Of a stretch of DNA of 64,000 nucleotides, positions 11,036-37,100 are shown piece by piece (position 1 is the stretch's first letter; each line of letters opens with the position of its first letter). Source of the stretch: Macrostomum lignano (lineage: Eukaryota); assembly GCA_002269645.1 (NCBI GenBank), contig NIVC01000616.1, forward strand, positions 124,001 to 188,000, given 5' to 3'. A program made the position numbers and the translations under genes. The notes beneath the pieces are model-generated. The model searched no databases and was not told where the DNA came from. It worked only from the letters and a program-made list of their open reading frames with translations.

Positions 11036-12220
11036 ACGCTCTCTTGACCAATCGGAGTGGAGCAACCACCTGTACTCTATACTCTCTTAATTTTTGGATT
11101 TTAATGCAACATGACCTTGAAATATTCAGTTGCTGATGACCTACAAGATTTTCTTCAAAAAAAGATGGCTCCCAGACAAATGCTTTGTTATTTGGTAGCT
11201 TCTCCGAGGGCCGGGGCACAGCCGATTACACCGGATGAACGAACAGACATTGATTCTGATGTTGATGTTCGAACCAATCAAACACGCTGCACGAGTGCTG
11301 CAACGGACGCATTTCAGAAGCATGTCGTGGTTTGGTAAAAAAGTTTTTTTTCAAAGAACCGCTGAAAGTATAGAAGGCAATTGCTGCGCAATAGCATTTT
11401 TTATTGCAATGCAACTGATATTCTGAAGAATAGATTTTTTATATTGTACATTGTATACTTAATACTTACGAGTAATATGAAATCAAGCAGCTTGAGTATA
11501 TCTTCAAACATTTTCATATTTGCCACGCATTCATCACACAGTTACTTTGAATCGCATTCTTCACACAGTTACTTTGCAATTTGCATCGCATTCATCACAC
11601 AGTTACTTTGCAATTTGCATCGCATTCATCACATTCCAGAGTTGAATCCAGCCGGCTCATTTCCGCGGCTAGGCCATCAGACCAAACTTTGGACGAAGTT
11701 TCGGCGCACGGCCTCTGTTGCTACTCTCAGATCGCGCCACTGATACCTATAGCCGAGTCTCCAACTCCCCCAGCCTGCCGCAGCCGCATGCCCACTGCTC
11801 ACGATGAAAGCCTGTTTGAAGCAAGTCATAAATCCGGGTGTCTTTCCGGTTGCTTCTACTGCCCATGCTGCCCGGTCTCTACAGCCCAACTGTTTCGAAA
11901 GCGATTTATGGCATAATTTTAGCATCGATCGTTTGTCTGTCCGCTAGCGGCTCTGGTCCAATGTGCCGGGATTCTCTTGGGGAGATGATTGAAAAATTTC
12001 CAGACTGTCCCTCAGAGCTCTGGCTTGTCTTAAGTTTGGTGACAATGTAGCTGATAAGACAGTTTTGAGCAAACTTGAGGGTCTCAAAGCAACTGCAGAG
12101 GCATCCAATGGCCTGCCCGAGAGGTCAGGGAGGGAGGCGATCGTGGAGGTTGTGCGGCAGCACATGAGGAAGAAAGACTGGCTGATTGTAGACGGATTTC
12201 CTCTTCAAGCCAAGTAGCCA
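11036..12220 (+). pseudogene. Decayed paralog of the cGAS-like/Mab-21 NTase exons 2-3
   Basis: Acceptor TTTTAG at 11035. Fragments SVADDLQDFLQKK, GSFSEG (11194) and ERTDIDSDVDV match ADVLQEILRKR, GSFSEG and GRTDIASDIDV. After acceptor ATTCCAG (about 11639): LNPA, LDEVSAHGLCCYSQIAP, IYGIILASIVCLS..SLGEMIEKFPDC and LRALACLKFGD match the intact gene. Several stops, frameshifts and a large internal deletion. Confidence 0.8.
11524..11635. repeat. Short intronic tandem repeat (CGCATTCATCACACAGTTACTTTG, about 4 copies)
   Basis: Direct reading; ends at the pseudo-exon 3 acceptor. Confidence 0.8.
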
Positions 12221-12928
12221 CTCTGCTGAATTCTAGAATGCGTACTTTGCTTTTCAAGTACTTTAGCGACTGCGAGCGACCAACCCCAACCAAGTACGAT
12301 ATTTACCGCGTACATTTCTGAACCGCTTTTATTTGAAGTACAAGGACCGACCGTTTGGCTATGGGGAAGCAAAACAGTCGCATAATCACATGATATCGTA
12401 CTTATTGAAATGTTTTGTCAGATCAGAGCAAAGATTTCCTCCTGTGCACAGCTAAACACCGAGTGCAGCCAACAGTCTTAGCGAACCGGACGGCTTCATA
12501 ACCAAAACAAGTCTACACGCAGTTCAGTTTTTGTTCCTGTCTTTTGGGTAGTTGAAGCATGCTTTAACTGCCTTTAATGACAGCGTGCCGCCTCCTGCAG
12601 CCCCTCTTTTATTTTTGTAAATTGTGTATTTTACCCTTGTGCGTTCCACTCTTGAATGTACAGTGCGCTCCCTATTTTGTGCAATTTCATACAAAGCCTT
12701 GTCTCGCCTCTCAGTGCAACTAGTTTTTTTCGCAGCCTTACCATTTTTGTTCAAGCTGCTTTGCCAACAGTTTTTATCGCTTTTAATCGCCTAAACGCCC
12801 GGTATCGAGTTAAATGCGTGGACTGCTTCATTATGGCTACTTTTCGCATTAGCGCCACCCTTTCCTGTCTTCGCCTTCCTGCTTAGGACATTAATAGAGC
12901 AGAAACCTGCTTTTTTGTCCTGGTCAGC

Positions 12929-15900
12929 ATGAGCTCTGTTTGGAGAATTTTGCAAACTATTGCAACTTTTCTGATGCAGGCCTTTGAACTATCTGATAAG
13001 GAAGGCTTAGACTCCGAGGTGAGTGATCAAGCTGTCATTGAGGCGGTGACGGCGGACGACGCAGATCTTACCTACAGGTACCTACAGCGCAGGCCAGCAT
13101 TGGTGGGTATATTAGTTCCGATGGACGACAAATTGTTATCCCCACCTCACCTGGCCTGCAGACTGGGCAGGCGAAATGTGCTAGAGATATTCTTGGCAGC
13201 CAAAATTGACATCAACCTGGAAACAAAAACCGGCGAGTCGCTTCTTTACATCGCGTCGCAAAACGGGCACCAACATGTTGTTGATCTACTTATTAAGGCT
13301 CAAGCCGATGTCAACCTTCAAGAGTTCGAAGGATGCACTCCAATCTACATTGCATCACAGAATGGTCACAGTAAAGTTGTTGACCTACTCATCAAAGCTC
13401 ATGCCGATGTCGATCTTCAAGAGACTGTTCATTTCACCTCACCTCTCTACATTGCATCACAGAATGGTCATCTTAAAGTTGTGAACTCACTTATTAAAGC
13501 TCAAGCCGATGTGGATATTCAAGACACTGAAGACTGCTCACCGCTCTATATCGCAGCGCACAACGATCACCCCGAAGTCGTGCACGCACTAGTTGAAGCG
13601 CAAGCCAACGTTGACATTCAGGAAATGGACAAAATGACTCCACTTTACATTGCATCTGAGAATGGTCATCGGAAAGTCGTGGAGTTGCTCATCAACGCAA
13701 AAGCCAACGTCAATCTCCAAGAGATTGAAGGATGCTCACCCCTGTATATCGCGTCACAAAATGGTCATTTTCGAATTGTAGACTGGCTTATTCAAGCGAA
13801 TGCCAATGTCGATGTTTCAAAAGCGGATGGGATGTCACCTATCTTTATTTCATCGCAAAACTGTCATTATAGAATAGTCGAATTGCTCATTAAATCCCAA
13901 GCTGATGTTAATCTTCAAGAGGTTGATGGATGCTCACCTCTCTACATTGCATCGCAGAATGGTCATCGTCAAATTGTTGACCTGCTTATCAAAGCTCAAG
14001 CCGACGTCAATCTTCAAAGGAACACTGGATCTTCGCCTCTCTACATTGCATCGCAAAACAACCATCTCCAAGTTGTTGCCCTGCTTATCAAAGCACAAGC
14101 GAGAGTCAATCTCCAAAGAAGCACGGGCGAGTCACCTCTTTACATTGCATCTCAGAATGGACACATTCAAGTGGTTGATGCCCTTATAAAAGCGCAGGCT
14201 GATGTCAATCTACAAACAAGAAATGGCTCCACATCTCTTCACATATCGTCTCAAGAAGGTCACTTGACGGTAGTGAAGGCGCTCATTAGAGCACAGGCTG
14301 ACGTAAATCGTTCAAAAAACCTCGGAGAGACACCCATCAAAATCGCCTCGGAGGCTGGGCACCTCAATGTGGTAAACATGCTCATAAAAGCGCATGCAGA
14401 CGTCAATGCTTCAGGATATGCTGGCTCTACGCCTCTCGACATTGCCTCTCAGAATGGCCATCAAGAAGTGGTGGCCTCACTGATTAAAGCGCAGGCCAAT
14501 GTAGATCTCCAAAGACACACAGGAGTCACACCACTCTACACAGCCTCACAGAGAGGTCACCCGCAAATAGTGGACATGCTCATTAAAGCAGGAGCTGACG
14601 TTAATCTCCAAGAAAAAGTACAAGGCCCATCACCTCTCTATATTGCGTCACAAAACGGTTGCCAGACGATCGTTGACTCGCTCATCAAAGCACAAGCGGA
14701 CGTGAACCTTCGCGAATTCGATGGGTGCTCCCCTCTCTACATTGCATCACAGAACGGTCATCTGCCTATCGTAGACTCACTCATCAAAGCCCAAGCCGAT
14801 GTCAATCTTCAAAGAAGCGATGGAATGTCGCCTCTCGACATTGCATTCCACACCGGGCGCATTCAAGTCGCGAATTTGCTAGTCAGCGCGTTAGCCGACG
14901 TCCATCTGCGACAATCCAATGGAAAGTGGCAAATAGAAACTGCAACCAACGCGCCAAAGGCTTCAGATTCCATAGACATGCTATTCGACTTAAGCTTGAG
15001 CGAAGAAGAGGACGAAACTGTTCCCAGCCTAGAGACGGATTCTGAGTCTGATTGCTCGTGAGATATTGCAATATTTTCTTTAATAAAAGCTTTTCAACTC
15101 AATTCCTGAAACTTTTGAAACTGTTACGTTTTACTGGGACTTGATAGAATAAAACAGTTTCAAAAATACTTTAGTAGAAATTTTGAATTTTAGGCCCCTA
15201 AATAAAATGAATATGAACACTGATTTACATATTTTAGAACACCTCCAGACGACACAGAGCTAAGCCGGCAACTGTACCTGGCACTCTCTCAGGCAGGATT
15301 CGTAAACTCGAGAGCTGCGCTGCAGAGTGCAGCAGCCGATGTTTTGCAAGAAATCTTAAGAAAGAGGCTTGAGAATGAAGACCAGTTTGTAGTCGGCAGC
15401 TTCTCCGAAGGCTGGGGCAACAGTCTGAAGACACTCGACGGTCGAACTGACATCGCGTCCGATATTGACGTGCTAAGTTTGACTCAGGGCCGCATGTACC
15501 ACCTGAAAGGCATCTGTGAGTGCGCGGAAGAAGAAACATTGCTTCATGAGTACAGTAACGGCCACATTGTGTGTTCCGGCTTCGGTAAGAGTTTCTCTGA
15601 GATTGGTATTTGTTGTGTCTTCTGTTTTTTGTGACAAATCAAAGGAACGAGTCTGGAACTTAAAATGTTAAATTAACCAGCCGATCCTCGGCTTTTGTTT
15701 TTTTTTTATTTCTGCAAGCCTAGCTTGCTCTCGTTACGCGTAGATTGCTAAGGCGTACGGTGCGCTTGGAAGCAAATCATTTTGTTTATGGTTCGGCTTG
15801 GCTTATACCTTATAGCCACAGCAGTATTGTAATACGAGCGTATTATGCCTGTAGTTCCGGTAATCAACTTTTTCGGTATACCTCTTGAATCTAGATAATA

Positions 15901-17418
15901 TTATTGCTAATACAGATTCCATGTAATAATTGACTCACAATTGTTTTTCGCAAATCCATTCCAGCTTCCAACCCAGCTCATGCGTATTCCGGAGCCACTC
16001 TGAGACCAGCAATTGACGATGTGACGGCTGGCCGGGTCTGCCGGTACCCGCCCATTGCGCCAATCCAGACGGACAGAGTCTCCAATTCCAACATTCCCTT
16101 GTCAATACTACAGGCGCTTCAAAATGACATCAACTCTGCCTCATCTCCCTGCCATGCTGTGCATGCAGCATCTCCAGGTCGAGGAGGTCAAGAACTCCGT
16201 GTTAGCACTAACTTTCTGGAGAAGAGAATGCAGCGATGTCTCACCACCCTGCAAGGACAGCTGTTTGTCACGCTGAAGTATCTAGTGAAAAAGGTTATAT
16301 GTCACAGTGATGCATTTAACATACAAGGTTTGAAGCCGTACCACGTAAAGACCATCACTTTCCGAATGCTGGAGGAGACGCCGGTCGACCAGTGGAAGCC
16401 AGAGAATCTTGTGCATCTGACGAGGAGATCACTGCAGATGCTGCTTGACAGCGTCCAGAACAGTCGAGCTCCAGAAAATATTCATGGCCGGATCATGGAG
16501 CATTTCTTCCTGAAGGATGCCGCCCTGTACCTCAAAGGCGCAGTTCAGAGAGACGGCAGTATGTACCAGACTCTAGGCGACATCGCAAACACACTGGAAA
16601 CGGTGATTCATCAGCTGCCTCAGCTGTTGCAGCAGTTCAGCCGTGCTCTGAGGCCCGTGAGTGACTCGGGAATTTTCTTCTTTCACCCGTTCCAAATCCT
16701 ACCGGATATGAGAGAGGCTGCCTTGCCGAATTCAGACGTCATCGAGTATTATGAGATCTACGATGTGGTGAGGGAATGTGTGGCAAAACTCTCCTTCACC
16801 AGCTACAGCATTCAATCTCAATATTCTTTAATAAAACTGATTGCCCGGCTGCCAGACTGCGCCTGCTCAGCACGGGATGCCTTGAGAACTTTAGCCTGCT
16901 TAAAGTTCGGTGACCGAGAAGCTGCTGAGACAACTGTGCTTCGCAGTAGTGGCCACCAGGTGTGCAGGGGCATTTCATGGCCAGCTGAAAAGTCGTCTAC
17001 CGAGGCCTCTGAAGAGTTCGTCTGGCGGCATCTGCGAAGCCGGGACTCCGCGTGGAAGTTCTGCTTTTACTATGAAAAGCAACCGGAATTTCGGTTTCTG
17101 AAAGGAGATCTGACCGACATCTTTCCGGTTCGCCTGGACAATTACGCTGTGTACTATTACATTAACTTTGACGCCCTGCTTTGGGCTCTGCGGTTTGAGC
17201 TGCTGGCAGACAGGGACTCCAGCGGCCAGGACTGGATTCGAGACGTGGCCGACCGCGAAGACGCAGACGAGCAGGAGCTTCGAGTGGCCGCCACCTACTA
17301 TGCCTGTCGCTGGCGGAGAAATCTTCTGCTGAAGAGACTGGCAGGCTCTGGATCCCCTAGCCAGCAGAGTGTGCTCAAGAAGCAGCAGGTTGAGCGGAAG
17401 AGCAGGAAAAGGAAGTAG
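12929..17418 (+). CDS. Ankyrin-repeat / cGAS-like (cGLR, Mab-21 family) nucleotidyltransferase fusion, about 1309 aa, 3 exons
   Basis: Exons 12929-15057, 15238-15584, 15965-17418. Intron 1 TC|GTGAGA...TTTTAG|A is phase 2 and removes the TGA at 15059. Intron 2 G|GTAAGA...TTCCAG|CT is phase 1. Total 3930 nt in frame. About 18 ANK repeats (SPLYIASQNGH). NTase motifs ELSRQLYLAL, GSFSEG..SDIDV and AIDDV; Mab-21 C-terminal motif KPYHVKTITFRMLEE...W..ENL...MEHFFL. Confidence 0.85.
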
Positions 17419-18791: not shown

Positions 18792-21700
18792 TTAAGAGGC
18801 CAAGTCGTCTGCAGGCCCGTCGTCGTTGTTCACCGTGCTGCGCGTGTCGTTGACAGTCGCATCCTTGGCTGACTTGGCCTTGCTGCACCGAAATGGGCCC
18901 ATGTAGCTCGACCTTGGCAATTAGAAAGTGGGCAAAATCAATCAACCAATGGCATGTCTACATATAAAAACGAAAACTCTGTCTCGCCCAGGTCGGCACC
19001 ATATAGTAATCTTACTAATTTTCATAATAATAGTAGCGTTAAAGTGGGTAATCTTACTAAGATTCTTACTAAGATTCGTAGTAGGATAAGGCGAAATTAG
19101 TACTTCTTACTACGACTTTGTTAGCTAATCTTGGTAATCTTATCAGGTGATCTTGGTAATCTTATTAGGTGCACAGTAGCAGAATTAGGGGGGGGGGGCG
19201 TCCCTAGGCGCCAAAAACATCGCCACAATGTTGATGCAATGTTGTCCGTAAATGTCATAATGTTGCTTTTGTTGTGGCAAATGAAGCACTGTTGACATGT
19301 CAACTTTCGCACGGAATGCTACTAATAGTACTAGTATATATACCTGAAAATGTGTATTTTCCATATAAAAAAGAAAAAATCAAACTCGACGGGGGGCGCG
19401 CGCCCTGTGCGCCCCCCCTCTAAGGCTCTAAATCCGCTACTGGTCATTGCAACAAGTGTGAAACCATAATAATCTTTAGTGTTTTCTTGAATACTAGCTT
19501 ACTAAGAAGATGACAAAACTTCTTTGTAAAAGTAGTAAGTTACTTATTAATATTCTACTAATAATACCAAGAAGATGATCTTAGTAATCATAATATGAAT
19601 CTTAGCAAGAAACTACAAAGATAACTACGAATTGTGTAATCTTAGTAAGATTAAACAACCTAAGACTTATCTTGCGAAGATAACTATATGGTGCCCGACC
19701 TGGGTGCGTACAAATTTGTTCGCTATGGATTCCCAAACCACTCAGTCAAATAAATACAAAGTATCAAATGAGATGAATTTGCACCTTCAACTCTTCTATA
19801 ACTAGTTTTACGACGTATAACTAAACTAAACTTCATTCGAAGTCCTAATCCTACTTAAATTTGACACAATCTGCAACTTTTTGACACAATTCTGTAAATT
19901 TTCTAGTCTCGATATTGGTCTTGTCTGAACGGTGCTATTCACTTTTAAATTTACTCTGTTTTCTTCTGCGAGACAACCACTTAACCTCCAGCTGTCTTCC
20001 TCGGTTTTGACTCTTAAAAAAAATGTCTCAACTCTGTAACTCAATAGGACGGAAACTGTAAGCATGTGAAGTTCATCTGCTTTTGCTTTGATTTTCGATT
20101 TGCTTCAAAATACTTCAATTTTTTACCTCCCATCTCTATCTTGAATGTTATTAGGCTTTTGTTTGAGTATGAATTTCAATGTCAGAATGCAGAATGCAAA
20201 AATAGTTCCGGGGATTGGGATTCAGCAGGTTTCAAGAGCTTGTATCTGCATATATGTATAGTTCGGAGAAGCATTTAAATCGTTTTGCCTCAGTGTAGCA
20301 ATGTATGTACGAGCTATGTAATGTATGCATTTGTGTGTAGGTATGTATGATTGTATACGTGTGTGCCTGTGAGTACGAGCTTATTTAGGAATTTGTGTGC
20401 ATGTATTGCATGTACATGTATGTACGAGCTATATATGTAGTACGGATGTGTGTGCATGAATTTATGCATGTCTTAATTTGCCTACTTTTGTCTATAGGCT
20501 GCGGCTGCATGCAGCAGATGGCAGATTTTCATATTGGATGCCTAGTCATTCAGGGACTCAGTTCGGTGCCATGAAATCTTTCTTAAGGACTCCGCTCACT
20601 AATAAATCTTACCTGTCGTCGTCAATCTCTGCACCGGCTCCCGCTGCGTCGCCTCCTTCCCCGTTTGGCGAGTCGGGGACCGATGGCTGTGACGGCAAGC
20701 TCTGCTCCGCAGTGCTCAACTCCATTTCGATGTCCCGTAGGATTAACTCGGTCTCAATGGCCGGTTCGCTGAAATTGGCGCAGGCTTAGTGTAGAACCCT
20801 AACCGCAACGCGTTACAATGTTACAATGAACCCTATTTCAACTTTGTGCATCTGTTCGGACTCTGATTTTTATGAAGTAACAGCTAGTGAAATTCACAGG
20901 CCATGAAATTCAGGGTTTCTGACCAGTATCCTGCTATTATGACGTTTTATAGCAGACTTGCTCTGGCGCTTCAGTAGCTTACATGTACATATCTGCATCT
21001 GCTACGACTGCTCGCTGCTTCTCATTACTCACCCGCCGCTGTCCTCGGGCAACTGGAGGCCTCTTCTCTGCATCTCCAGTCTCACATCGGAACTGGCCCA
21101 GGATGACAGCTGTGCCAGCAGCCTCCTGCTGCTGTCGTCCCCCAGTCCCGCGTTCTCAGCGATCAGAGTCGCGCAGACCAGGCAGTCGCGATAGACCGCC
21201 ACCATCAGCGGAGTGACACCGTTGGAGTCCGTCACATCGAGACTGGCTCCGTGCTGCTGGAGAAGCTGGAGGATGTCGGACCTGCCTGCCAAAACCGCGA
21301 GATGCGCCGGCGTCCGACCCTGTCCGTTGGCTTTTTTCGGATCAGCTCGTCCGTCGCTTAGCAGGAACTCGACAACGTCTTTGAAGCCCCGACGGCAGGC
21401 GTACATGAGCGCCGTGTTTCCCTGCTGATCCGCGTGGTCGAGCGGCAAGCCCTGTTCGCATGCAAACTTCACAATGTTCAGGTGACCTTCCTGATCGGCG
21501 CTAATGCAGGCCAAGTGCACAATGTCTCTGCCCTTCTCGCTCCTGTGGCCAATGTTGCAGTCGTAGCCCTGGAGCAGCTTCAAGGACTTCAGATGGCCCC
21601 TGCTGGCGCTCTCGAGAACCGGAGTGTTCCCGTCACGATCCGCCAAGTCCAAGGGAGCATTATTCTCTCTGAGAAATCTGAGCACATGGGCATGCTTAGA

Positions 21701-24700
21701 AGTGGCGGCAATTTGAGCCAAACTCCTCTGATGACCATCGCGATGCTCTTTCCAGTCGGTCATTTCAGAGGTCACTTTTTGGATCAAATGAAGGTTGCCG
21801 GATGCCACAGCCCAGCTAATGGTGCCCTTGGCAGTCGGCTCGTCATCGGCTATTAGCTGTGCACCTCGCTTGACCAGCCAGTCTGCGATGTGCTGGTGAC
21901 CGCGTTGCACAGCCAGGTGGATGATGCAGTCGGGCAGCGCGGGATCTTCGGCGTTCTGGTGCAGAAAATTGGCGACCTCCTCGTGCCCGTTGAGCACTGC
22001 GAGCTGAAAGGGCGTCAGTCCTTGGGCATTCAGCTTCCTAAAACAGTCGGGACAGGTCTCATGAATGCGCTTGAGAATGTTTAAGTTTCCATGCATTGCG
22101 GCATAGTGAGCGCTGTTGCATTTATTGCTGCAGGTCGCAGCTTCTTTGAAGCCTTTTAGTAGCAGAAGTTTAAACACTGAGAGGTTGCCAATGGCTGCGG
22201 CAAGTTGCAGGGGCGACAGTGTGCCAGAAGGCTCAGCGGCATCTGGTTGAGCAGCTATCTGGCAGTGATCGAACAGCCACTGAACCAAGCTCAACTTGCT
22301 TTTCATCACTGCCACGTGCAGTGGTGTGCGGCCTTCAGAGTTTCTGATGTCCGTGCGGCAGTTCATGGCGAACAGCTCGGCGGCCATGTCCAGTCTTCCT
22401 GTCATGAGTGCACAGTGGAACGCCGTGTTCCCCTGAGCATCCTGTTTGTCTACAATGTCAGCGAGGAAGGCGCATCTCGAGTTCCTTCTTAGAGACCGCA
22501 ACAGTCGAATGTTCCAAGTTCGAACTGCGTGGTGGAGAATAGTTGCTCCCTCGTTGTCAATTTTTTCATCTAAATGTAAGCCTTTATTCAAAAGAAAGTC
22601 CAGGTGCTTGATGTCCATGTGCTTGAAAATTTGCTCCATCTTGAGCACACTGGCTACGTGCCTCATGCTCAATTGAGCTTCCCTTGCAGCCAGAATATCC
22701 ATGATCTTCACCGAGTTCAGTGCCGCCGCCAATGAGTAAACTGACAGCCCGAGCTTGTTCTCGGCGAGTGCGTCCGCCCCTCGATCAAGCAGAAGCGCGG
22801 CCGCCTTCTCGTTTCCGAATCGAATCGCGCTGAAAAGTGGCGTTTCACCTTCATTGTCTTTAAGGTCAATAATTTCTGACAGACCCTTAGAAAGTAGTAA
22901 TCGAATGATCTCCTTGCTTCCACCGGCAGCCGCAAAGTGATGCGCGCTTTTGCCATCTTTATTGGTTGCTTTTACATCCAGTCCGGGTGCTTCAATCAAG
23001 TCTTTCAGGGCTTTAATTGCGGCGTCTCTTGTGACGAATCCCTGTTGCAGATCAGATTTTACGCTGGAATCCGGGACGTCATTCCCGTACATTTCGAGTG
23101 GGGGCATCAGTTTTTGCTGGTTATTTGAATGCTCCCTGGACTCAGGGTTTTGCAGCTTGGATGTGCATTTCTTGCCGCAAAGTATGAGAAGGGCATTGTT
23201 GCCCTCCAGATTGACTTCCGATGCCCTGGCTCCAGCCTCAAGTAACAGGGGAATCAGTCTTACGTGGCCATTTTTCACAGCAACAATCAGGGCGTTGTCG
23301 CCCAGCGAATTCTTGTAGTTCAGGTGCACTCCTTGCTCAAGCAGAAACTTCACTATGCCTTCGTTCCCATTGGCGCACGCGATAGTGAGGCAGTTTTCAC
23401 GTGATTTTGTTCGACTTCTTAGGGAAACTCGGACATTGGCGCTTTGCGTTTTCTTGAGAATTTCCAGACTTCCGGATTGACACGCCAGGTGAGCAACGGT
23501 GCGATCTTCGTGGTCCACTGTTTCATCGATTCTGCCATGGTTGCTCTGAAGGATATTCAGGATGGATTCGCAGCCAAGCACAACGCTTAGCATGACAGGC
23601 GAAGTTCCAGAGTCATCCAGTGCATTTGGATCGCCAACCCCCTGATCGAAAAGAAAGCGAATGGCCGCCTCGTTCTTGCCCTGGACGGCATAGTGGAGAA
23701 CAGTTTTCAGTGCATAGTCGGTGACAGAAAATGAGCACTTAATATTGTGCAGAAACATCAGGAACTCGCGGTCTTGCTTTTCAGCCGCCAACATAACTGG
23801 AACAACGCCGTTCCAATCCGGCTGATTAAGTTTGGCGGCATTGTCGTGAAGAAGCTTTATCAGGTTCAAAGATCCTGACTGACAGGCGAAGTAAGCCGGC
23901 GTCTTGCCATCGTGATCAACTGCATTCACGTCGGCACCTTTCTTAATCAGGAACCTGGCCATGTCAAACTTGTTGCTCGAGCAGGCCAGCATAAGTGGCG
24001 TGACGCCAGCGCTGTCCTCCTGGTCCATGACGCAGTCGAACAGGGACAGGCACTGGACGATTTTACGGCTGTCCGGTCAGAAACTCCAAAATAGCCAATG
24101 AATTTTTCGTGGCCTTCAGCGCCTCTAGAAGAAGAGAATTTCCGTCGTGGTCCACCGTCTGCAGATCGGCTCCTTTTTCATGCAAGTACTTGACGATGTC
24201 AAGCTCCCCTTTGGAAACAGCGTAATTCATAGCAGTTTTCCCGAATCTGTCCTTGTGGTCAACCATGCACATTTTCGACTGGCCTGTCAGGAGTTTTATA
24301 GCATCGAACGCACCATTCTGAACGGCAATGATCAGTGGCGTCATGCCGTTAATATCCGGCTCGTCGAGGCAAACTTTTCGTTGTAGGAGAAACTGCAGCA
24401 GCGCCACGTTGTTTTCTCTGACAGCGTAGAAGGCCACAGTGTGCCCGTGGCTGTCTTTCCTGTCAAGTCGGAATTTTTTGTCTGCTAAAAACCGAACCAT
24501 CGACAGCGATTTGTTCCGCGCGGCGCAAAGGATGGCCGTCTCTCCCAGCCGATCAGGGGTGTCCAGATTAGCGCCCCGCTCTCCGAGCAGCATCAGTATT
24601 TCTTCCTGCTTGCTGGCAGCCGCTCTCAGCGCCGGCGTTACGCCGCGAATATTTTGGACATTCATATTGCATTTCTGGTCAATTAGAAACTCCAGGGCTT

Positions 24701-25832: not shown

Positions 25833-25885
25833 CTGTCGTTGTAACCAGAGTTGGGAGCTTTTAATAAATGTACCGATTTTTCAGT

Positions 25886-26575
25886 GTTCTCTCATGACCG
25901 CTTTAATTTCTCTCATGACCGCTTTAATTTCTCTCATGACCGCTTTAATTTCTCTCATGACCGTTTGATTTCTCTCATGACCGCATCAATCTATTTCATA
26001 ACCGCATCAATCTCTCTCATGACAGCATCAATCTCTCTCAGAACCGCATCAATCTATTTCATAACCGCATCAATCTCTCTAATGACAGCATCAATCTCTC
26101 TCAGAACCGCATCAATCTCTCTAATGGCTGCTGCATCAATCTCTCTCATGACAGCATCAATCTCTCTCATGACAGCATCAATCTCTCTCATGACAGCATC
26201 AATCTCTCTCATGACAGCATCAATCTCTCTCAGAACCGCATCAATCTCTCTCATGACAGCATCAATCTCTCTCATGACAGCATCAATCTCTCTCAGAACC
26301 GCATCAATCTCTCTCATGACAGCATCAATCTCTCTCAGAACCGCATCAATCTCTCTCATGACAGCATCAATCTCTCTCATGACAGCATCAATCTCTTTCA
26401 TGACAGCATCAATCTCTCTCATGACAGCATCAATCTCTCTCAGAACCGCATCAATCTCTCTCATGACAGCATCAATCTCTCTCAGAACCGCATCAATCTC
26501 TCTCATGACAGCATCAATCTCTCTCATGACAGCATCAATCTCTCTCATAGACGCATCAGTCTCTCTCAGCACCAC
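25886..26575 (-). repeat. 21-bp minisatellite (about 32 units) encoding heptad (MREIDAV)n on the minus strand
   Basis: Unit GCATCAATCTCTCTCATGACA. ORF 26054-26605; two units carry GAG>TAG and one unit is 20 bp. Confidence 0.9.
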
Positions 26576-27543
26576 ATCAAGCTCTCGATTTTGTAGCTCA
26601 TTCAAACTCTCATCACAAGCATTTCCCTTTCTATATACCTTACAGGCTAGATAGAGTACAGTAAATCTTATCTACTTAAAAATGAATAACTGTACTAATA
26701 GGCAAAATGAACTGTAGTTCTTACCAAGCTTGATGAATAGAATTAGCCACTAGCAACTCATTGTACAGCCTTTATACCCTCACTAGAGTCTCGCAAAATT
26801 GATAGTCAAATCAGATAAACCGGCTTAAAACTTTCTAAATAGATTAAAAAGGCGTTGTCAAAAACACCAGGGTTTTATCCGCTGTGGAAAAAAGAGTTAC
26901 GAAGTTCCACTTTGTAGGCAGTTGGCAATGTACGCAGCAATGTACGGCCGCGGGTGTAAATGTTCATAAGGGACAAGGGACAAACTGGAGCTGTAAATGC
27001 TTCTATTTATAGCTCCGCACGTTCTGCTTTTTGAGGCGCTCATTTAGCGAATAAAAAGTTGCAGTTGAAATTACGATAGTAAAATGTATAGCTCTGCTTG
27101 TGTACGTTCAGCTTGCAATGTGCATTCCAATGTTTACACTTAACTTACTAGTTCATCTTTCTGTACTTGCCAGTTCATCATTATAATTTGCGTTTAACCC
27201 ATTTCCTGAAAATCTAACACTTTAACAGGAATCACTACAACTACTCGCACTTCGGTAATCAGTCGAATCTTAGCTTATGACTCTGAATCAGCCGCGGAAG
27301 AAAATAAAATGACAAGTAGGACAGGACCGAAAACTAGAACGCGACACCTTGCAGGCGTGATTTATTAAGTGTTATTAGTATTGTTTTGTGCAAGTAAAAT
27401 CATGAAAAGTACATCTCAGCACTGCTTGCGTGTCAACACTAACCCATTTCGAACGACAGCAACGAATGAAATTCTGTACGTTTTATACCCATCAAAGAAA
27501 ACTAGCTGGTTTTCCTTCAGTTCTCACCGTTATGCTCGGCGGT

Positions 27544-30370
27544 TCAGGGCTTCCGACAGGCCTGGATTTTGGCGATCGCCCTGCCAATGCCAGGCGAGAG
27601 CCACACGTTGAGCAGCCTCTGACGGAACTCGCGCTCCGGCATGCCGGTCCTGATTCGCCTTCGCCGTAATAAAAACGTTTCGACGCCCCACGTAGTCAGG
27701 GCCACAATCCCGAAAACGATGAGAAAAATGAGGGTCACTGTGGCCCCGACCAGCGCTGCGTTATTCAATGTTCGCAGCACCTTTACCACAATTTCCCCGA
27801 TTCCGTTAGGCAGCATGACGAGCTGCGATCCTCGCGTCATCAGCTGAAGTGAGGCTCGTCTGCCATAAATCAGGAAGTTTACAAAGTGCTCAGTTGTTGT
27901 TGAACAGATCGTAGCTCTCAAAACCTTGGAACTCTCTGAATCTTGAATCGATCTTCTCCCAGTCCGGCTCACAGTTGTGCACAACCTTCTCAATGCTGTT
28001 GGCTGTTGCAATTCTAAGAAATCCGCGGAACTCCTTGAACCCTTTGTCCTCGCGCTCAGCTCCGAACTCGTACGTCACGCCTTGTCTGCTACACTGAGCT
28101 GAATCCCAGTCGGTGATCACAAAGTGGACATCTTTCTCAACTCCATGCACTCGGCGCTTCAGCACGATGTGATCCCACCGTCTCAGGTCCGACTTCGTCA
28201 CTCCGTCTTCGAACTGCAGACTCTCGCAGCTATCTTTGATTTTTGTTAATTCGGTCCCGAACAGACTCTGCACGCCACGTAGTCCTTCGCAAGACCAGAC
28301 CATCTTCAGCCCGAAGCAGAAGTCCTTGTCAGTGACCTTGCTGCCTCCTTTGCCAACTGAGCCTTTGAAGTCATCGTCCGAGTTAAGAAATGTGCAATCC
28401 TGAATCTCATCCAGACGAGACGCACTCGGCTCGACATCCAAGCTGGGGTGCTGCACTCTGCGGATGATATCTGTGCTGCTAAAGTCCAGAGGCTCCATCC
28501 GCACTTTCCGGTATGGAGCATTGTTCTCGTAGATCCGAACTCGCACGATGTCCGAACAGCCCGAGACCTTTTGAATGTCTCTCAGAATGGCATCGTGCGT
28601 GTAAAATCTCGCAAACTTTTGATACTTGATGTGACATTTACCGAACTCCAGCAGCTGAGCGGCTGACTCGATAGGCACACAACACTGCTCCCTGTTGCTG
28701 GCGTGCCTGATGCTGCACCAACGAGCAAAGTCTCTCGAGCTGTTCCACTGTAGATCAAACTGCCGTTCACCGATCCGCGACTTTGCTCTGGCAACCACTT
28801 GGTCAGGAGAAAAGTGAATTTCAGCAGGCACTTTGTAATCGACTTCAAAGAGTTCATCTTCTACTTTAAAGCTTACACTCCTTTCAATGATTTCGTGCGA
28901 GTTCTCGCACGGGTTTACTCTGAATTCAGTGTACTCATACATTGCTAAGTCTAATTCATACTCGCCAGTAGCCTCTGAAATAACTTTTGGATTTTCTAGA
29001 ATGGCTGCTCTGGTGTACATCCCGCTGTCTTTCTCTTTCTTGAAGCTGACTATGCTGCCTCTCTTAAGGCAGCTTGGCTTTTTCACCCTAGTGCGGGTAT
29101 CAATTGGTCGTTTTGAACCGCCTCCGTAGAGAGAACAGTTCTCTTTGACGTCATTGTGAACTACAAGTTGTGCTTCAGATTCCCTGTTACCAATGACGTA
29201 CTTGATCTCCCGGTGTTCACTGACATTCTCAGCGTCATCAATGCTGTACTGCAGAGTTTCCAGTTTAATCTGCTGAGAGGAGGAGCCCAGCTGCACTCTG
29301 AGAACAGCGCGATGTGTTTTTCCTGAGCAGATTATGTCACCAGGACGAAGGTCTCTCGCTTTTACCTGCTCAATTCGGTTGCTAGTTGGTGACGCTCTTC
29401 CATTGAGCAGACTCTGCAACCAATACGTCTCATCTTCTGATTGCGAGCATGAGACCACAATCTGCGCAACGTCTTTGCTCGATTTTGGGGACCTGAACGC
29501 CAGGTCTTTAATCACGTTTGCCTTCTCAGCGAGTCTTGCCTGATAGGTTTGAGGCAGTTGGGATCTTCTGGTCTTCAGAGCTGTGTCAGCTTTGAGTTCT
29601 TCGCCCGACTTGTTAATGCTTTGGAATTTCGAATTTTTCCAGTCTTCCTCTGCGACAAGAACTGTGAGCAAGTGCCCGGTGTCATCCAGGTCCGTGACTT
29701 TCTTCACCTCTCCGTGAATCGTGCTCCAGCCGAATTTCAAATTCATGTGGTCATTCTCCTTCACCTGGTGAATCGGATGCTGATCAGACAGGTAGATCGG
29801 AACTAGAACTGTATCCAGATGAGTAGAGTTGATCGTCTTGCACCATCTCGCGAACTGTCCCGAGTTACTCGCCATTCTGCCATAGTTCCGGTCGTTCAGT
29901 CGGCTCTCGGCTCTCTGAAGCACCACCTCGGGTGGGTAGCAGCAGCTCTTGGAGAACAGCAGGAGTCTGCAGTAGCGACGGCCTGACAGCAGAAATTCCT
30001 CTCTCACGACAGTCTTCACCGCTCTGTGCCACCCGTAGTGAAACGCAGTGGCAACAGTCTTGTCGGCTGTTGTTGTGACTCGTTCGATCAGGATTGTGCG
30101 GGGCATGCCGTTATACCTGATCTCCAGCACGTCCGCAGGCTTCAGTTGGTGTAGGTTGTACTCTGTGATGCTCACCCAGCCTCGCTTTATGGCTTCATCA
30201 TCTACCACAACATCGGCGTCGGTAGCCAAAGAAATAAACTCATTTTCGTTCAAAAAACCGTGGTTGCACAGCAGCGACTCGAGGTCGGTTCCGAGGTTGT
30301 GCAGAACAGGTAGGACATCGCTAGCATCGAAGGCTGCGCTAGTGTGAGAGGCTGGCAGTTTGTGCTGCAT
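27544..30370 (-). pseudogene. Multi-LRAT (permuted NlpC/P60) protein, copy 1, frameshifted at the catalytic Cys (about 942 aa if repaired)
   Basis: ORF 27890-30370 ends DLFNNN*; the tail EHFVNFLIYGRR..hydrophobic segment..CRKP continues in the frame of ORF 27544-28011. Relative to copy 2 (AAC TGT GAG CAC) it reads AAC TGA GCA C, a 2-nt deletion. May be an assembly error. Confidence 0.75.
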
Positions 30371-31735
30371 CTGTTGAGTAATAATTTATGCCGGATTTCA
30401 TGCATTCGTATGGACAAAGAAATATTATAAATCGATTTTTTAGATTTAAAGGGACTTATTGAATCGTGAAAAGTAATTTTTTTAATCCATTCCAGGAACA
30501 GTTCTACATTAACTTTCGGCAGCAAGCTTGAAGCTAAAGCAAGGCTGGTGTGAGCAGCAGGGTATTCCACAATCTCAGGTGCATACATTTGGCTGCATCT
30601 AACTTTACTGACTAACCAAAGTGTTGAATTAGCAAATCAGCAAAACAAAATCTCAAACACAATTGCTGACAGTGCTGCTTGATTCCACTCGTATCTGATC
30701 GTGAGGGGGACACAAATATTCAAATAATAGTATTCTCGATCATATTCACGTTTTGACTATACTATGACTTTCGATTGCAGCTTAATATAGAGTAAATATA
30801 CGAGCTAAGTTAAGACTTACTGATGACAAAAATATTTGCCAAATATCCGCGTTCAAAAAAGAAGAAAAGGTGTCTTCGCTTCCGAAATTTCAGCAGTCAC
30901 TTTTCCTAATCATTTCAAATTGTTTTGAATATCGTTTTTATAGTCTTAGTGGAGATTAGCTTATCAAATTACGAAATAAAAACTCACTCTCAACTCCTTG
31001 AAAAAGAAGCCTTCTTGATTTTTTTTCGAAACACGACGTCATACGAGCGTATCCAAGTACAGAAGGCGGTTTCATTTTAATTTGCTACTATTTTATCTCA
31101 GAAACTATTGATTTAACGCACCTTTGGGCGTCCGCATGACATGCTTGATAGCTGGCTTGCGGCTGAATACTTTTGCATTTATCAGTTAGCTAGCGAGATT
31201 TTAATCTCTGGTTTTAGCAATTCGGTTTTCGTTACGGTAGATTGGGTACAGTTCTCTCCACAAATGCAAATGCAGATATGAAAACAAATTGAATGTGCTC
31301 GCACCCAAGGTGGATTGAAAGGCTATTCAATGAGTTAAAAATGATTGACTTACTCAATAATTTCAGTTAGTCAACGAACACTAACCACTGAAAAGCAGCT
31401 AAGAGCAAGCAAAGTCACGATTCTTTACAAGTAACTGCATGGCCCATGCCATGTTGTTTTATTCTGTTCTCTTCTTAAGATCATATGCATTTTGTACAAT
31501 TTTCCATAACCTAACTCATTTGCTCGTTTATATTTTCTAAATAATCAGAGTGCTCTTCAATTGGCAGAGTGACATTATCAGAGTTCTTCCAGAGAGACAT
31601 CGTTAGAGTGCTTAATATAGCCTGAGGCAAGATTGAAGTAGGAGTTTTCACATTTGTGTGATAGCATTTAAATACTCCTAGGGAAATCTGAGAGTCATTT
31701 TCTAAGAAATATCAGAACGACACAAAAGAAAGTAT

Positions 31736-32526
31736 TAGAGTGCTCCCAGAGTGACATTGCGGTAGAATCAGATGCTTCTAGAGTAACATTGCAGTAGAAT
31801 CAGATGCTCCCAGAGTGACATTGCAGTAGAATCAGATGCTCCCAGAGTGACATTGCAGTAGAATCAGATGCTCCCAGAGTGACATTGCAGTAGAATCAGA
31901 TGCTCCCAGAGTGACATTGCAGTAGAATCAGATGCTCCCAGAGTGACATTGCAGTAGAATCAGATGCTTCTAGAGTGACATTGCAGTAGAATCAGATGCT
32001 CCCAGAGTGACATTGCAGTAGAATCAGATGCTTCTAGAGTGACATTGCAGTAGAATCAGATGCTCCCAGAGTGACATTGCAGTAGAATCAGATGCTCCCA
32101 GAGTGACATTGCAGTAGAATCAGATGCTCCGAGAGTGACATTGCAGTAGAATCAGATGCTCCCAGAGTGACATTGCAGTAGAATCAGAGTGCTCCCAGAG
32201 TGACATTTTAGTAGAATCAGATGCTCCCAGAGTGACATTGCAGTAGAATCAGAGTGCTCCCAGAGTGACATTGCAGTAGAATCAGATGCTTCTATAGTGA
32301 CATTGCAGTAGAATCAGATGCTCCCAGAGTGACATTGCAGTAGAATCAGATGCTCCCAGAGTGACATTGTAGTAGAATCAGATGCTCCCAGAGTGACATT
32401 GCAGTAGAATCAGATGCTCCCAGAGTGACATTGCAGTAGAATCAGATGCTCCCAGAGTGACATTGCAGTAGAATCAGATGCTCCCAGAGTGACATTGCAG
32501 TAGACTCAGATGCTCCCAGAGTGACT
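31736..32526. repeat. 32-bp minisatellite (about 24 copies)
   Basis: Unit CAGAGTGACATTGCAGTAGAATCAGATGCTCC; starts at 31811 and 31843. Confidence 0.95.
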
Positions 32527-33855: not shown

Positions 33856-34116
33856 GGGTTGCAGCCTAGTCGTCAGAGTTGGCGGACTCACGACTTGAAG
33901 GTCGGGGGTTCGATTCCCGATTCGACTCGGAACAGTTTGTGTTTTTGAGCAAGACACTTAACTCTGCATTGCTTCAGTTCCCCCCGTGGAAAAATGGGTA
34001 CCAACATTAGCTGGGGGAATTGAGGGTGTGGCGACCCCCCCCCCCCAGTCCTTGGACTGAACAGCCGTATGCAGCCTTCAGATGCTGTCGGTTGCGCATA
34101 TTTGGGCGGGTGTACT
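33856..34116 (+). mobile_element. CORE-like tRNA-SINE (copy 2)
   Basis: B-box-like GGTTCGATTCCC; AGCAAGACACTTAACTCTGCATTGCTTCAG and CCCAGTCCTTGGACTGAACAGCCG shared with copy 1. Confidence 0.75.
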
Positions 34117-34265
34117 CAATAGTAGTTATTATTATAGTGAATGCATTTAGTCCAAAAACCAAGTCTTAATAAGCAAAGCATGATACGCTGGCAAAAGTCT
34201 GTCGCAGCAATAGAATCCAGTCTGCGACCAACCTATAGCATGTAAAATATTTCAGTTCAAACAAG

Positions 34266-37100
34266 TCAGGGATTTCGGCAAGCTTTAAGATAGGCTATCG
34301 CCATTCCGGGCACTGGCGTGAGCCAAGCGTTCAGGATTCGCTGTCGAAATTCATTAACTGGCATGCCAGTTCTGATCCGCCTCCGGTGCAGTAAAACTGT
34401 TTCCACTCCGCTGGATATAACGGCCACAACAGAAGCTACCCAACTCACAACGAAAGTAACCCTTCCAAGCTTTGAGCCCGCAGCAAGGACCCTAGAAAAT
34501 ACTTCCACGAATTCTATTACCCGAGATGATATCGAGCTGATTCCACTGGGTATTCTCACGAGGATTGTGCCTCTCGACATCAGCTGAAGAGAAGTGCGTC
34601 TGCCATAAATCAGGAAGTTTACAAAGTGCTCACAGTTGTTGTTGAACAGATCGTAGCTCTCAACACCTTGGAACTCTCTGAATCTTGCATCGATCTTCTC
34701 CCAGTCCGGCTCACAGTTGTGAACAACCTTCTCAATGCTGTTGGCTGTTGCAATTCTAAGAAATCCGTTGAACTCCTTGAACCCTTTGTCCTCGCGCTCA
34801 GCTCCGAACTCGTACGTCACGCCTTGTCTGCTACACTGAGCTGGATCCCAGTCGGTGATCACAAAGTGGACATCTTTCTCAACTCCATGCACTCGGCGCT
34901 TCAACACGATGTGATCCCACCGTCTCAGGTCCGACTTCGTCACTCCGTCTTCGAACTGCAGACTCTCGCAGCTATCTTTGATTTTTGTTAATTCGGTCCC
35001 GAACAGACTCTGCACGCCACGTAGTCCTTCGCGAGACCAGACCGTCCTCAGCCAGAAGCAGAAGTCCTTGTCAGTGACCTTGCTGCCTCCTTTGCCAACT
35101 GAGCCTTTGAAGTCATCGTCCGAGTTAAGAAACGTGCAGTCCTGAATCTCATCCAGACGAGACGCACTCGGCTCGACATCCAAGCTGGGGTGCTGCACTC
35201 TGCGGATGATATCTGTGCTGCTAAAGTCCAGAGGCTCCATCCGCACTTTCCGGTATGGAGCATTGTTCTCGTAGATCCGAACTCGCACGATGTCCGAACA
35301 GCCGTCTGTCCTATGCGACTCCATCAATAAGACGTCATGAGTGTACACACCAAGCGACTTTGTGAACTTGATGTGACCTTTACCGAAATCCAGCAGCTGA
35401 GCGGCTGACTCGATAGGCACACAACACTGCTCCCTGTTGCTGGCGTGCCTGATGCTGCACCAACGAGCAAAGTCTTTCGAGCTGTTCCACTGTAGATCAA
35501 ACTGCCGTTCACCGATCCGCGACTTCGCCCTCGAAACCACTTGGTCAGGAGGAAAGTGACGTTCAGCAGGCACCTTGTAACTGACTTCAAAGAGTTCATC
35601 TTCTACTTTAAAGCTTACACTCCTTCGAACGATTTCGTGCGAGGTTTTCCACGGGTTTACTCTGAATTCAGTGTACTCATACATTGCTAAGTCTAATTCA
35701 TACTCGCCAGTAGCCTCTGAAATAACTTTCGGATTTTCTAGAACGACTGCTCTGGTGTACATCCCGCTGTCTTTCTTTTTCTTGAAGCTGACTATGCTGC
35801 CTCTCTTAAGGCAGCTTGGCTTTTTCACCCTAGTATAGATATCAAATGGTCGTTTTGAACCGCCTCCGTAGAGAGAACAGTTCTCTTTGACGTCATTGTG
35901 AACTACAAGTTTGGCTTCAGATTCCCTGTTACCAATGATGTACTTGATCTCCCGGTGTTCACTGACATTCTCAGCGTCATCAATGCTGTACTGCAGAGTT
36001 TCCAGTTTAATCTGCTGAGAAGAGGAGCCCAGCTGCACTCTGAGAACAGCGCGATGTGTTTTTCCTGAGCAGATTATGTCACCAGGACGAAGGTCTCTCG
36101 CTTTTACCTGCTCAATTCGGTTGCTATTTGGTGATGCTCTTCCATTGAGCAGACTCTGCAACCAATACGTCTCATCTTCTGATTGCGAGCATGAGACCAC
36201 AATCTGCGCAACGTCTTTGCTCGACTTTGGTGACCTGAACGCCAGGTCTTTAATCACGTTTGCCTTCTCAGCGAGTCTTGCCTGATAGGTTTGAGGCAGT
36301 TGGGATCTTCTGCTCTTCAGAACTGTGTCAGCATTGAATTCTTCGCCCGACTTGTTAATGCTTTGGACTTTAGACTTTTTCCAGTCGTCCTCTGCGACAA
36401 GAACTGTGAGCAAGTTCCCGGTGTCATCTAGGTCCTTGACTTCTTTCACCTCTCCGTGAATCGTGCTCCAGCCGAATTTCAAATTCATGTGGTCATTCTC
36501 CTTCACCTGGTGAATCGGATGCTGATCAGACAGGTAGATCGGAACTAGAACTGTATCCAGATGAGTAGAGTCGATCGTCTTACACCATCTCGCGAACTGT
36601 CCCGAGTTGCTCTGCATTCTGTCATAGTTCCGGTCGTTCAGTCGGCTCTCGGCTCTCTGAAGCACCACCTCGGATGGGTAGCAGCAGCTCTTGGAGAACA
36701 GCAGGAGTCTGCAGTAGCGACGGCCTGACAGCAGAAATTCCTCTCTCACGACAGTCTTCACCGCTCTGTGCCACCCGTAGTGAAACGCAGTGGCAACAGT
36801 CTTGTCGGCTGTTGTTGTGACTCTTTCGATCAGGATTGTGTGGGGCATGCCGTTATACCTGATCTCCAGCACATCCGCAGGCTTCAGTTGGTGCATATTG
36901 TCGTCATCTAGCCTTACCCAGCCTCGAATTTTATCTTCATCATTTAGTTCAATTTCGGTGTCGGTGCCAGCGCCAGCTGTTCTGTTCGAGTCGCTCTGGG
37001 GTAACAATTGGATTTCGCGCTCGTCCATGACCAGATCGTCCAGCGGCTCCTCGATGTAGGCGTCTTCGCCACCCCGTAGAGCTGCCAGTTCTTGTTCCAT
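34266..37100 (-). CDS. Multi-LRAT (permuted NlpC/P60) protein, copy 2, intact, about 944 aa
   Basis: Open frame. About six LRAT-like modules (L.P.D...H...RA.SRL....Y....N[S/C]..FARWC). The last has DVHFVI...YDLFNNNCEHF (Cys codon 34632-34634), followed by a hydrophobic C-terminal segment. Likely start is MEQEL at 37100, just after a CAG acceptor. Confidence 0.85.
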   Translation of the reverse strand: MEQELAALRGGEDAYIEEPLDDLVMDEREIQLLPQSDSNRTAGAGTDTEIELNDEDKIRGWVRLDDDNMHQLKPADVLEIRYNGMPHTILIERVTTTADKTVATAFHYGWHRAVKTVVREEFLLSGRRYCRLLLFSKSCCYPSEVVLQRAESRLNDRNYDRMQSNSGQFARWCKTIDSTHLDTVLVPIYLSDQHPIHQVKENDHMNLKFGWSTIHGEVKEVKDLDDTGNLLTVLVAEDDWKKSKVQSINKSGEEFNADTVLKSRRSQLPQTYQARLAEKANVIKDLAFRSPKSSKDVAQIVVSCSQSEDETYWLQSLLNGRASPNSNRIEQVKARDLRPGDIICSGKTHRAVLRVQLGSSSQQIKLETLQYSIDDAENVSEHREIKYIIGNRESEAKLVVHNDVKENCSLYGGGSKRPFDIYTRVKKPSCLKRGSIVSFKKKKDSGMYTRAVVLENPKVISEATGEYELDLAMYEYTEFRVNPWKTSHEIVRRSVSFKVEDELFEVSYKVPAERHFPPDQVVSRAKSRIGERQFDLQWNSSKDFARWCSIRHASNREQCCVPIESAAQLLDFGKGHIKFTKSLGVYTHDVLLMESHRTDGCSDIVRVRIYENNAPYRKVRMEPLDFSSTDIIRRVQHPSLDVEPSASRLDEIQDCTFLNSDDDFKGSVGKGGSKVTDKDFCFWLRTVWSREGLRGVQSLFGTELTKIKDSCESLQFEDGVTKSDLRRWDHIVLKRRVHGVEKDVHFVITDWDPAQCSRQGVTYEFGAEREDKGFKEFNGFLRIATANSIEKVVHNCEPDWEKIDARFREFQGVESYDLFNNNCEHFVNFLIYGRRTSLQLMSRGTILVRIPSGISSISSRVIEFVEVFSRVLAAGSKLGRVTFVVSWVASVVAVISSGVETVLLHRRRIRTGMPVNEFRQRILNAWLTPVPGMAIAYLKACRNP

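Follow-up and report, generated by a model that had tools for sequence, protein, structure and literature searches.

An ankyrin-fused cGLR gene beside poly-LRAT genes in Macrostomum lignano: a probable juxtaposition of two tandem-expanded families

We analysed a 64,000-nucleotide stretch of DNA from the flatworm Macrostomum lignano, referred to here as the window, whose interval from 11 to 37 kb holds a Mab21/cGAS-like gene with a relic copy, open reading frames (ORFs) built of ankyrin (ANK) repeats, and two multi-LRAT genes. An earlier note on this DNA had proposed an innate-immunity cluster in which a cGAS-like receptor (cGLR), a giant ankyrin protein and poly-LRAT enzymes act together. Its family assignments hold, namely a cGLR-type nucleotidyltransferase (NTase), ankyrin arrays, PLAAT/LRAT-type enzymes and a PLD3-like neighbour. 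The locus itself is, in our judgement, probably a juxtaposition of members of two tandem-expanded families and an orphan ankyrin gene, and not a demonstrated functional module. All of its genes except the ankyrin-only gene belong to fast-duplicating families, and the signs of turnover (lineage-specific expansion, tandem arrays, a relic pseudogene, gene conversion and a fresh frameshift) support birth-and-death evolution of multigene families as the overall pattern. An immune role of these genes is plausible; on present evidence, the locus reveals no new immune module.

Results

An intact ANK-cGLR fusion gene and its relic

The cGLR of the window is one intact three-exon gene, ANK-cGLR, at 12929-17418 on the plus strand, which encodes a 1309-aa protein with a single terminal stop. 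Its exons, together with a decayed copy, are as follows.

11117-12181, plus strand: decayed ANK-Mab21 (cGLR-like) paralog, found by a tblastn search of the window with the live Mab21 part.
12929-15057, plus strand: ANK-cGLR exon 1, with the start ATG, an N-terminal segment and the ankyrin repeats, from the ORF, Pfam Ank families and donor/phase analysis.
15238-15584, plus strand: ANK-cGLR exon 2, the NTase N-lobe, with GS at 15395-15400 and S-D-I-D-V at 15458-15472.
15965-17418, plus strand: ANK-cGLR exon 3, with the third catalytic Asp (AIDDV, D at 16015-16017), the Mab21 C-lobe, a helical extension and the stop codon.

The upstream ankyrin ORF (710 aa, 12929-15061, plus strand) ends in ...TGC TC|GTGAGA, a strong donor at 15058, and exon 1 closes with two bases of a Ser codon ahead of this GTGAGA. 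The Mab21-like frame has no start codon of its own and opens directly after a TTTTAG acceptor at 15237, for which the donor at 15058 supplies exactly the phase needed. The second intron (15585-15964, G|GTAAGA ... TTCCAG|) is likewise in frame. Splicing across the first intron gives the ANK/Mab21 junction peptide ...ETDSESDC-S-TPPDDTELSRQLYLAL..., and exon 1 carries about 18-19 ankyrin repeats, of which 17 keep a strict 33-aa register. Annotated M. lignano paralogs are also fusions of ANK and Mab21 (800-1000 aa) with a common junction motif, SD.ELS.QLH.AL; the position of an intron after ...GF/GY|AS is kept in the paralogous loci, and the exon-2 unit recurs in the paralog P0008 on locus L005. 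Because the splice sites are canonical GT..AG, the phases match and the paralogs are fusions, we regard the gene as intact and its apparent breaks as introns; the same three lines of evidence rule out a stand-alone or disrupted cGLR. What the earlier note had described as a separate, disrupted cGLR is thus the C-terminal half of the ANK-Mab21 fusion. The correct model for biochemistry is the full-length 1309-aa ANK-cGLR, not a 'broken cGLR' beside a separate ankyrin gene.

The sequence at 11117-12181 reads as a genuine relic pseudogene of the ANK-cGLR family. What is left of it is scattered over three reading frames and broken by stops: GSFSEGRG corresponds to the GS motif region, TPDERTDIDSDVDV (including TDIDSDVDV) to the DxD region, and SRLSLRALACLKFGD... 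to the C-terminal helical part. The middle has lost about 300 codons, and an ankyrin array, looked for upstream of the relic, was not found.

Fold, active site and family of ANK-cGLR

At the sequence level, the window cGLR scored 20.0 bits against Pfam Mab-21_C, below the cut-off of 24.1, and phmmer against the Protein Data Bank (PDB) returned marginal cGAS matches (E ~0.2), which are consistent in direction and are not evidence alone. An AlphaFold2 (AF2) model of the Mab21 part, built from an alignment of 23 family members, reached a pLDDT of 87.8 and a pTM of 0.88. The top 20 Foldseek matches of this model in the PDB comprise the coral protein Sp-cGLR1 (8gjy), which ranks first, human and porcine cGAS, MAB21L1 and MiD51 (E 4e-6 to 7e-4, probability 1.0, TM (target) 0.45-0.58); bacterial CD-NTases and OAS ranked lower. 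The model supports a Mab21/cGAS-type bilobed NTase fold. The active-site motifs are GSFSEGWG, SDIDV and AIDDV, and the corresponding family patterns hVGS[YF][SA]EGWG, SD[IV]D and P[AS]xDxV (the third also as P-x-x-D-x-V) are kept in those paralogs whose sequence extends over these positions. Predicted beta-strands carry DID and the third Asp, and the predicted GS / DxD / D active site is complete. The Mab21 core is near-neutral, not basic, with a pI of ~6.3.

After the core, exon 3 encodes a helical extension of about 230 aa (16900-17418) that is family-specific and modelled with high confidence. Three of its motifs, LPDCA.SARE.LRAL.CLKFG, DSAWKFCF and NFDALL..LRLEL, are kept across the M. lignano family, and Foldseek found no PDB fold match for it. 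A homolog search with the Mab21 part returned at least 40 proteins, all from M. lignano and 64-30% identical, and the ANK-Mab21 family forms tandem arrays at other loci.

According to Li et al. (2023, bioRxiv 10.1101/2023.02.22.529553), most platyhelminths are without cGLRs, fusion to ANK or TPR repeats is found in a minority of cGLRs, and dsDNA- and dsRNA-sensing cGLRs are associated with basic surfaces. Among the entries of their screen table are five M. lignano BOX15_Mlig proteins (#89-93), whose ANK part was left off for expression. In the table rows examined, these five share the GS and DxD motif blocks with the window's ANK-cGLR family, and their Note field, which elsewhere in those rows names enzymes taken further, is empty. 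We therefore place the window's ANK-cGLR, from its motifs and modelled fold, as a further member of the recognised cGLR clade with predicted activity. The dozens of ANK-fused cGLRs of M. lignano stand against the loss in most flatworms described by Li et al., and the published screen used Mab21-only fragments. By analogy with known cGLRs, ANK-cGLR would make a nucleotide second messenger on activation; given the core pI, the ankyrin array, and not a basic nucleic-acid groove, would serve as the recognition or regulatory module. Pfam scans of the submitted window ORFs, a subset of all ORFs, gave no STING, TIR or SAVED match, and the literature search returned nothing specific on cGAS, STING or LRAT in Macrostomum.

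A public gene model in this family deserves mention. At locus L008 (NIVC01001606.1, 10761-50205), P0009 (871 aa) is annotated as the product of a 19-kb gene, within which lie two complete ANK-Mab21 copies (10.2-15.0 and 24.1-29.3 kb of the locus); a reverse-strand fragment is located just upstream, at 4.8-5.7 kb. The P0009 model may have merged tandem paralogs.

Two poly-LRAT genes, one with a broken catalytic codon

The right half of the interval carries two co-oriented tandem copies, LRAT1 (27544-30370) and LRAT2, which are apparently intronless and 94% identical across 2.4 kb.

34266-37100, minus strand: LRAT2, intact, 944 aa from the ATG at 37100, with the catalytic Cys codon at 34632-34634.
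27890-30370, minus strand: LRAT1 body, 826 codons plus TGA, the stop at 27890-27892 arising from a 2-bp deletion.
27544-27891, minus strand: LRAT1 tail, out of frame (EHFVNFLIYG...), an open 115-codon frame with a membrane anchor and the natural stop.

Both proteins match Pfam LRAT (PF04970) above the cut-off of 24.3 bits, LRAT2 with 61.9 and LRAT1 with 34.7 bits, and when the LRAT protein was scanned as separate segments, three modules matched the family (20.9, 23.8 and 29.5 bits). In LRAT2, the position of the catalytic Cys is Ser in module 1 (NSGQF) and in module 2 (NSSKDF), while the catalytic module shows DHIV.., VHFV.. and NCEHF, which are (nearly) invariant in the paralogs. The family alignment gives the same pattern: each paralog has Ser or Ala where the Cys would stand in modules 1 and 2, and the last module keeps the two His and NCEHF. 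Since this holds in every paralog, modules 1 and 2 are best seen as ancient pseudo-enzyme modules. The sole hydrophobic anchor, defined by 19-residue windows with a Kyte-Doolittle hydropathy >1.6, lies at residues 911-938 of the 978-aa LRAT2 ORF, where AF2 predicts long helices with low confidence. PDB sequence matches were limited to PLAAT2 and PLAAT3 at NCEHF and were marginal (PLAAT2, E ~0.07); like those to cGAS, they agree in direction and are not evidence by themselves. Weak tandem-Tudor-like Foldseek matches of LRAT2 came from a low-confidence model and were set aside. Taken together, the motifs and the anchor point to a tail-anchored PLAAT-type phospholipase/acyltransferase with pseudo-enzyme modules.

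The LRAT2 protein from Met to stop is identical to UniRef A0A1I8H137. A word-indexed homolog search with LRAT2 found the window's own paralog only, and the family was recovered by an exhaustive HMMER search, which returned M. lignano paralogs at 35-40% identity and distant multi-LRAT proteins in the bivalves Mytilus, Potamilus, Sinanodonta and Mercenaria; close relatives came from M. lignano only. At other loci, this family also forms tandem arrays. Two ancient pseudo-enzyme modules followed by a single live catalytic module constitute an uncharacterised architecture, distantly shared with bivalves.

The lesion of LRAT1 is a loss of 2 bp, AACAACAACTGTGAGCAC to AACAACAACTGAGCAC (TGTGAG to TGAG), which turns the Cys codon of NCEHF into TGA. 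LRAT1 has a single active-type LRAT module with a single catalytic Cys codon, and the deletion sits exactly in this codon. The identical deletion is present in the Mlig_3_7 contig described below, and the truncated 826-aa ORF is listed under NCBI and UniRef. Between LRAT1 and LRAT2, the tails are saturated at synonymous sites (proportion of synonymous differences, pS, 0.72-0.80) with an omega of ~0.15, and the bodies have a dS of 0.09 with an omega of 0.63. These values would fit a history that began with an old tandem duplication (tail pS), followed by long purifying selection on both tails and a recent gene conversion that homogenised the bodies (body dS); a very recent inactivating 2-bp deletion, or an error, would then have cost LRAT1 its Cys codon and its anchor. 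The paired live and dead copies claimed earlier are thus borne out, the relic facing the intact ANK-cGLR and LRAT1 facing LRAT2. Of the three disrupted genes out of five that the earlier note had counted, these two are secure and the third is not.

Three sites in the LRAT2 region, 37134, 35421 and 36427, distinguish the window from Mlig_3_7: two are substitutions and one is a 2-bp indel (CG present in the record). The 2-bp indel lies upstream of the ATG at 37100, likely in the 5' untranslated region of LRAT2, and accounts for the different N-terminal extensions of database ORFs such as P0046 and P0279.

Ankyrin-only ORFs and the contig join

Between ANK-cGLR and the LRAT genes lie two ankyrin ORFs and, next to them, a minisatellite.

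24063-25808, minus strand: ankyrin-repeat ORF A, 581 aa, ANK only, with the stop TAA at 24063-24065 inside TAAAAT.
21029-24028, minus strand: ankyrin-repeat ORF B, 999 aa, ANK only, with 16 open codons ahead of its ATG at 24028.
25888-26586, no strand: 21-bp minisatellite, 33 copies; only the assembly of the window connects the ANK/cGLR and LRAT halves at this point.

ORFs A and B contain ankyrin repeats only, as judged by Pfam, and are one frame apart at an AAAA run, with 34 nt between them. They may be one gene of ~1590 aa with a 1-nt frame change or an assembly error, or else two genes, in which case the two adjacent ankyrin genes are possibly trans-spliced. A single-base indel at the AAAA run is indistinguishable from an assembly error here; the two assemblies differ at several such sites. 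The giant ankyrin protein of the earlier note thus survives as real ankyrin ORFs and is not established as a single gene.

The locus was compared with Mlig_3_7 contig NIVC01001020.1 (GCA_002269645.1), which has 14.5 kb in common with the window and encodes the 826-aa LRAT1 ORF (P0001). Position 1 of this contig equals window position 25857, beside the 21-bp minisatellite, and we therefore took the window to come from another assembly that joins two Mlig_3_7 pieces. Across the shared 14.5 kb there are 79 differing alignment columns, mostly intergenic and at 37.7-40.4 kb, including several 1-2-bp indels; window 26890-31370 is 100% identical in Mlig_3_7 over its 4.5 kb. The physical linkage of the ANK-cGLR and LRAT halves depends on one assembly's join at the minisatellite.

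Linkage at paralogous loci

Conserved linkage of the two families was not seen at the paralogous loci. Five other ANK-Mab21 loci (L003-L007) and L008 had no LRAT gene in their ±10-kb flanks, three other LRAT loci had no Mab21 gene within ±10 kb, and no ankyrin-only gene stood beside the other LRAT arrays (three loci). Neighbours at these loci include HLH, metallophosphatase, peptidase S10, vinculin and small GTPase genes and a TGS-domain gene. In the window, the gap from ANK-cGLR to LRAT is 10 kb. We also found no nucleotide-receptor domain in the LRAT proteins: in whole-protein and segment-wise Pfam searches, LRAT was the sole family at E ≤0.01, and the few weaker matches were none of them nucleotide receptors.

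Explanations weighed

A number of points weigh against a plain juxtaposition or narrow the ground on which we draw it. Flanks of ±10 kb could miss a neighbour as distant as the 10 kb seen here. On NIVC01001606.1 (168 kb), an ANK-Mab21 array at ~15-40 kb and an LRAT array at ~120-139 kb lie ~80 kb apart, and the latter holds the closest paralog of LRAT2; some ancestral or functional linkage of ANK-Mab21 and LRAT may therefore exist. This co-location may reflect an ancient shared segment and is not tight linkage. The left half of the cluster is read from one assembly because ANK-cGLR and the ankyrin-only ORFs have no close catalogued counterparts: no protein in a collection of 5.8 billion was more than 64% identical to ANK-cGLR, and a search across the ORF A/B junction found only generic ankyrin proteins at ~25% identity and no close relative. 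Expression, the ANK-cGLR splice junctions and the relation of ORFs A and B are argued from sequence logic and paralogs. The full-length AF2 model of LRAT2 was poor (pLDDT 63.7, from a 10-sequence alignment), and Foldseek with this model returned nothing at E <0.01.

Part of the pattern could be an assembly artefact, through the single-base indel in the ankyrin ORFs, the 2-bp indel in LRAT1, a wrong minisatellite join at 25.86 kb, or more than one of these. Small indel discrepancies are common among the 79 columns that separate the window from Mlig_3_7, the ankyrin frame changes at an AAAA run, the LRAT1 tail remains a flawless reading frame on which purifying selection has acted over the long term, and the contig boundary falls at a tandem repeat. 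Against this, the LRAT1 deletion is identical in both assemblies within the fully identical 4.5-kb stretch, the loss occurred in a TGTG context and is no homopolymer slip, the Mab21 relic is far too decayed for an error, and the join was made by the later assembly reading through the repeat. We consider an artefact unlikely. Somewhat less doubtful, though still well short of our preferred reading, is that the ANK-Mab21 and poly-LRAT families serve other, non-immune and fast-evolving biology of this flatworm, for example in reproduction, in secretion or adhesion, or in the remodelling of lipids or the turnover of organelles, and that the cGAS-like domain perhaps makes no signalling nucleotide, a possibility also for MAB21L1 or MiD51. 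These two non-immune Mab21 proteins are among the fold matches at similar scores, and housekeeping functions in lipid metabolism are known for PLAAT enzymes. On the other side, the complete, family-wide GS/DxD/D triad argues for catalysis, whereas MAB21L1 and MiD51 are not known to have NTase activity, and large lineage-specific expansions with pseudogenes are typical of immune receptors without being exclusive to them. The Mab21 core, with its pI of 6.3, is unlike the basic nucleic-acid-sensing cGLRs of Li et al., and the empty Note field of the five screened M. lignano homologs, in the rows examined, also leans towards a non-immune role.

The earlier note went further and tentatively proposed a sensor, second-messenger and membrane-effector module under arms-race evolution; rapid turnover is indeed visible, and the module itself is unsupported. 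In its explicit form, ANK-cGLR would sense a pathogen cue and a nucleotide signal, acting directly or through ankyrin proteins, would activate membrane-anchored poly-LRAT phospholipases, as a STING-independent module kept by selection. All genes in the 26 kb do belong to sensor-like or lipid-enzyme families, both families turn over rapidly, NIVC01001606.1 carries both within ~80 kb together with the closest paralog of LRAT2, and the N-terminal pseudo-LRAT modules could be regulatory. Yet a receptor domain for nucleotides is absent from the Pfam matches of the LRAT proteins, none of eight paralogous loci has the two families adjacent within 10 kb, the ankyrin-only genes are not beside other LRAT arrays, and the linkage here crosses an assembly join; operon-like functional clusters are moreover unusual for animal genes, and in the rows of the Li et al. 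table examined no M. lignano cGLR carries an enzyme label. We hold such a module to be very improbable. A related and marginally more remote proposal is a Macrostomum pathway, again independent of STING, in which the cGLR product or contact with ankyrin repeats would trigger membrane lipid hydrolysis by tail-anchored poly-LRAT, the Cys-less modules would act as regulators or decoys, and the recurrent co-location (10 kb, ~80 kb) would be a remnant. Juxtaposition of two tandem-expanded families thus remains our preferred reading.

Other features of the window

The two flanking genes named in the earlier note were both recovered. At 2044-2496 (plus strand) lies an ORF for a 150-aa secreted-type precursor whose start resembles a signal peptide and is followed by an acidic propiece of DLAEP-type repeats and an Arg-rich C-terminus of (RRRIF/RRRFY)n repeats, encoded by 15/45-bp tandem repeats. 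The cationic peptide ORF is real and has no Pfam match; in sequence, it looks like an antimicrobial-peptide precursor. At ~58.3-62 kb (plus strand) there is a PLD3/4-type phospholipase D gene, whose exon ORFs (e.g., 59053-59727 and 60438-60746) match the PLDc active-site motif and PLDc_3; tandem repeats of 42 bp (59256-59567), 22 bp (59966-60424) and 19 bp (60802-61300) lie within this gene.

Just beyond LRAT2, an uninterrupted 462-aa ORF at 39664-41052 (minus strand) encodes a Cys-loop ligand-gated ion channel (Neur_chan_LBD and Neur_chan_memb), and a tRNA-Asn(GTT) at 38386-38459 (minus strand; Rfam 66 bits, and ARAGORN) is located between LRAT2 and the channel gene. Intergenic ORFs at 17.5-21, 30.3-30.6 and 37.2-38.1 kb gave no Pfam match.

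Repeats are abundant. Satellite arrays of ~12 kb in all occupy 43359-45062 (23-bp x74), 45067-46157 (17-bp/464-bp), 46979-49877 (24/48-bp x94), 51265-55626 (23-bp x192) and 57021-57777 (16-bp x47), with further arrays at 4.7-7.9 kb; between 4 and 8 kb, AG-rich microsatellite tracts produce a strong GC/AT skew. An array of 32 bp x24.5 (31741-32525) separates LRAT1 from LRAT2. A dispersed repeat of ~230-290 bp is present in three copies of 77-81% identity (2903-3190, 33856-34085 and 62602-62883), one of them just downstream of LRAT2, and may be a transposable-element fragment.

Comparison with known systems

ANK-cGLR resembles ANK-fused cGLRs such as those of Stylophora pistillata in its Mab21/cGAS fold and its GS / [DE]x[DE] / D motifs, and the ankyrin fusion is a recognised minor cGLR architecture. 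It differs from them in its very long array of ~18-19 repeats, the additional ~230-aa helical domain and the near-neutral core (pI 6.3). Its likeness to cGAS is marginal at the sequence level (20 bits vs 24.1; E ~0.2).

The poly-LRAT proteins share with the PLAAT/HRASLS/LRAT enzymes of the NlpC/P60 superfamily (PLAAT2, 4dpz; PLAAT3, 4dot) the C-terminal NCEHF Cys motif, two conserved upstream His and, in LRAT2, a hydrophobic C-terminal anchor. In contrast to PLAATs of ~160 aa, the M. lignano protein has ~950 aa, with two degenerate Cys-less modules ahead of the catalytic one and further beta-rich segments.

The pairing of a cGAS-type NTase gene with a nearby gene for a membrane-directed lipid enzyme gives the locus a superficial likeness to bacterial operons of the cyclic-oligonucleotide-based antiphage signalling system (CBASS). 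CBASS effectors, however, carry a nucleotide-sensing domain and are strictly co-operonic, whereas the M. lignano genes are convergent or 10 kb apart, have no Pfam sensing domain and do not keep their adjacency among paralogous loci.

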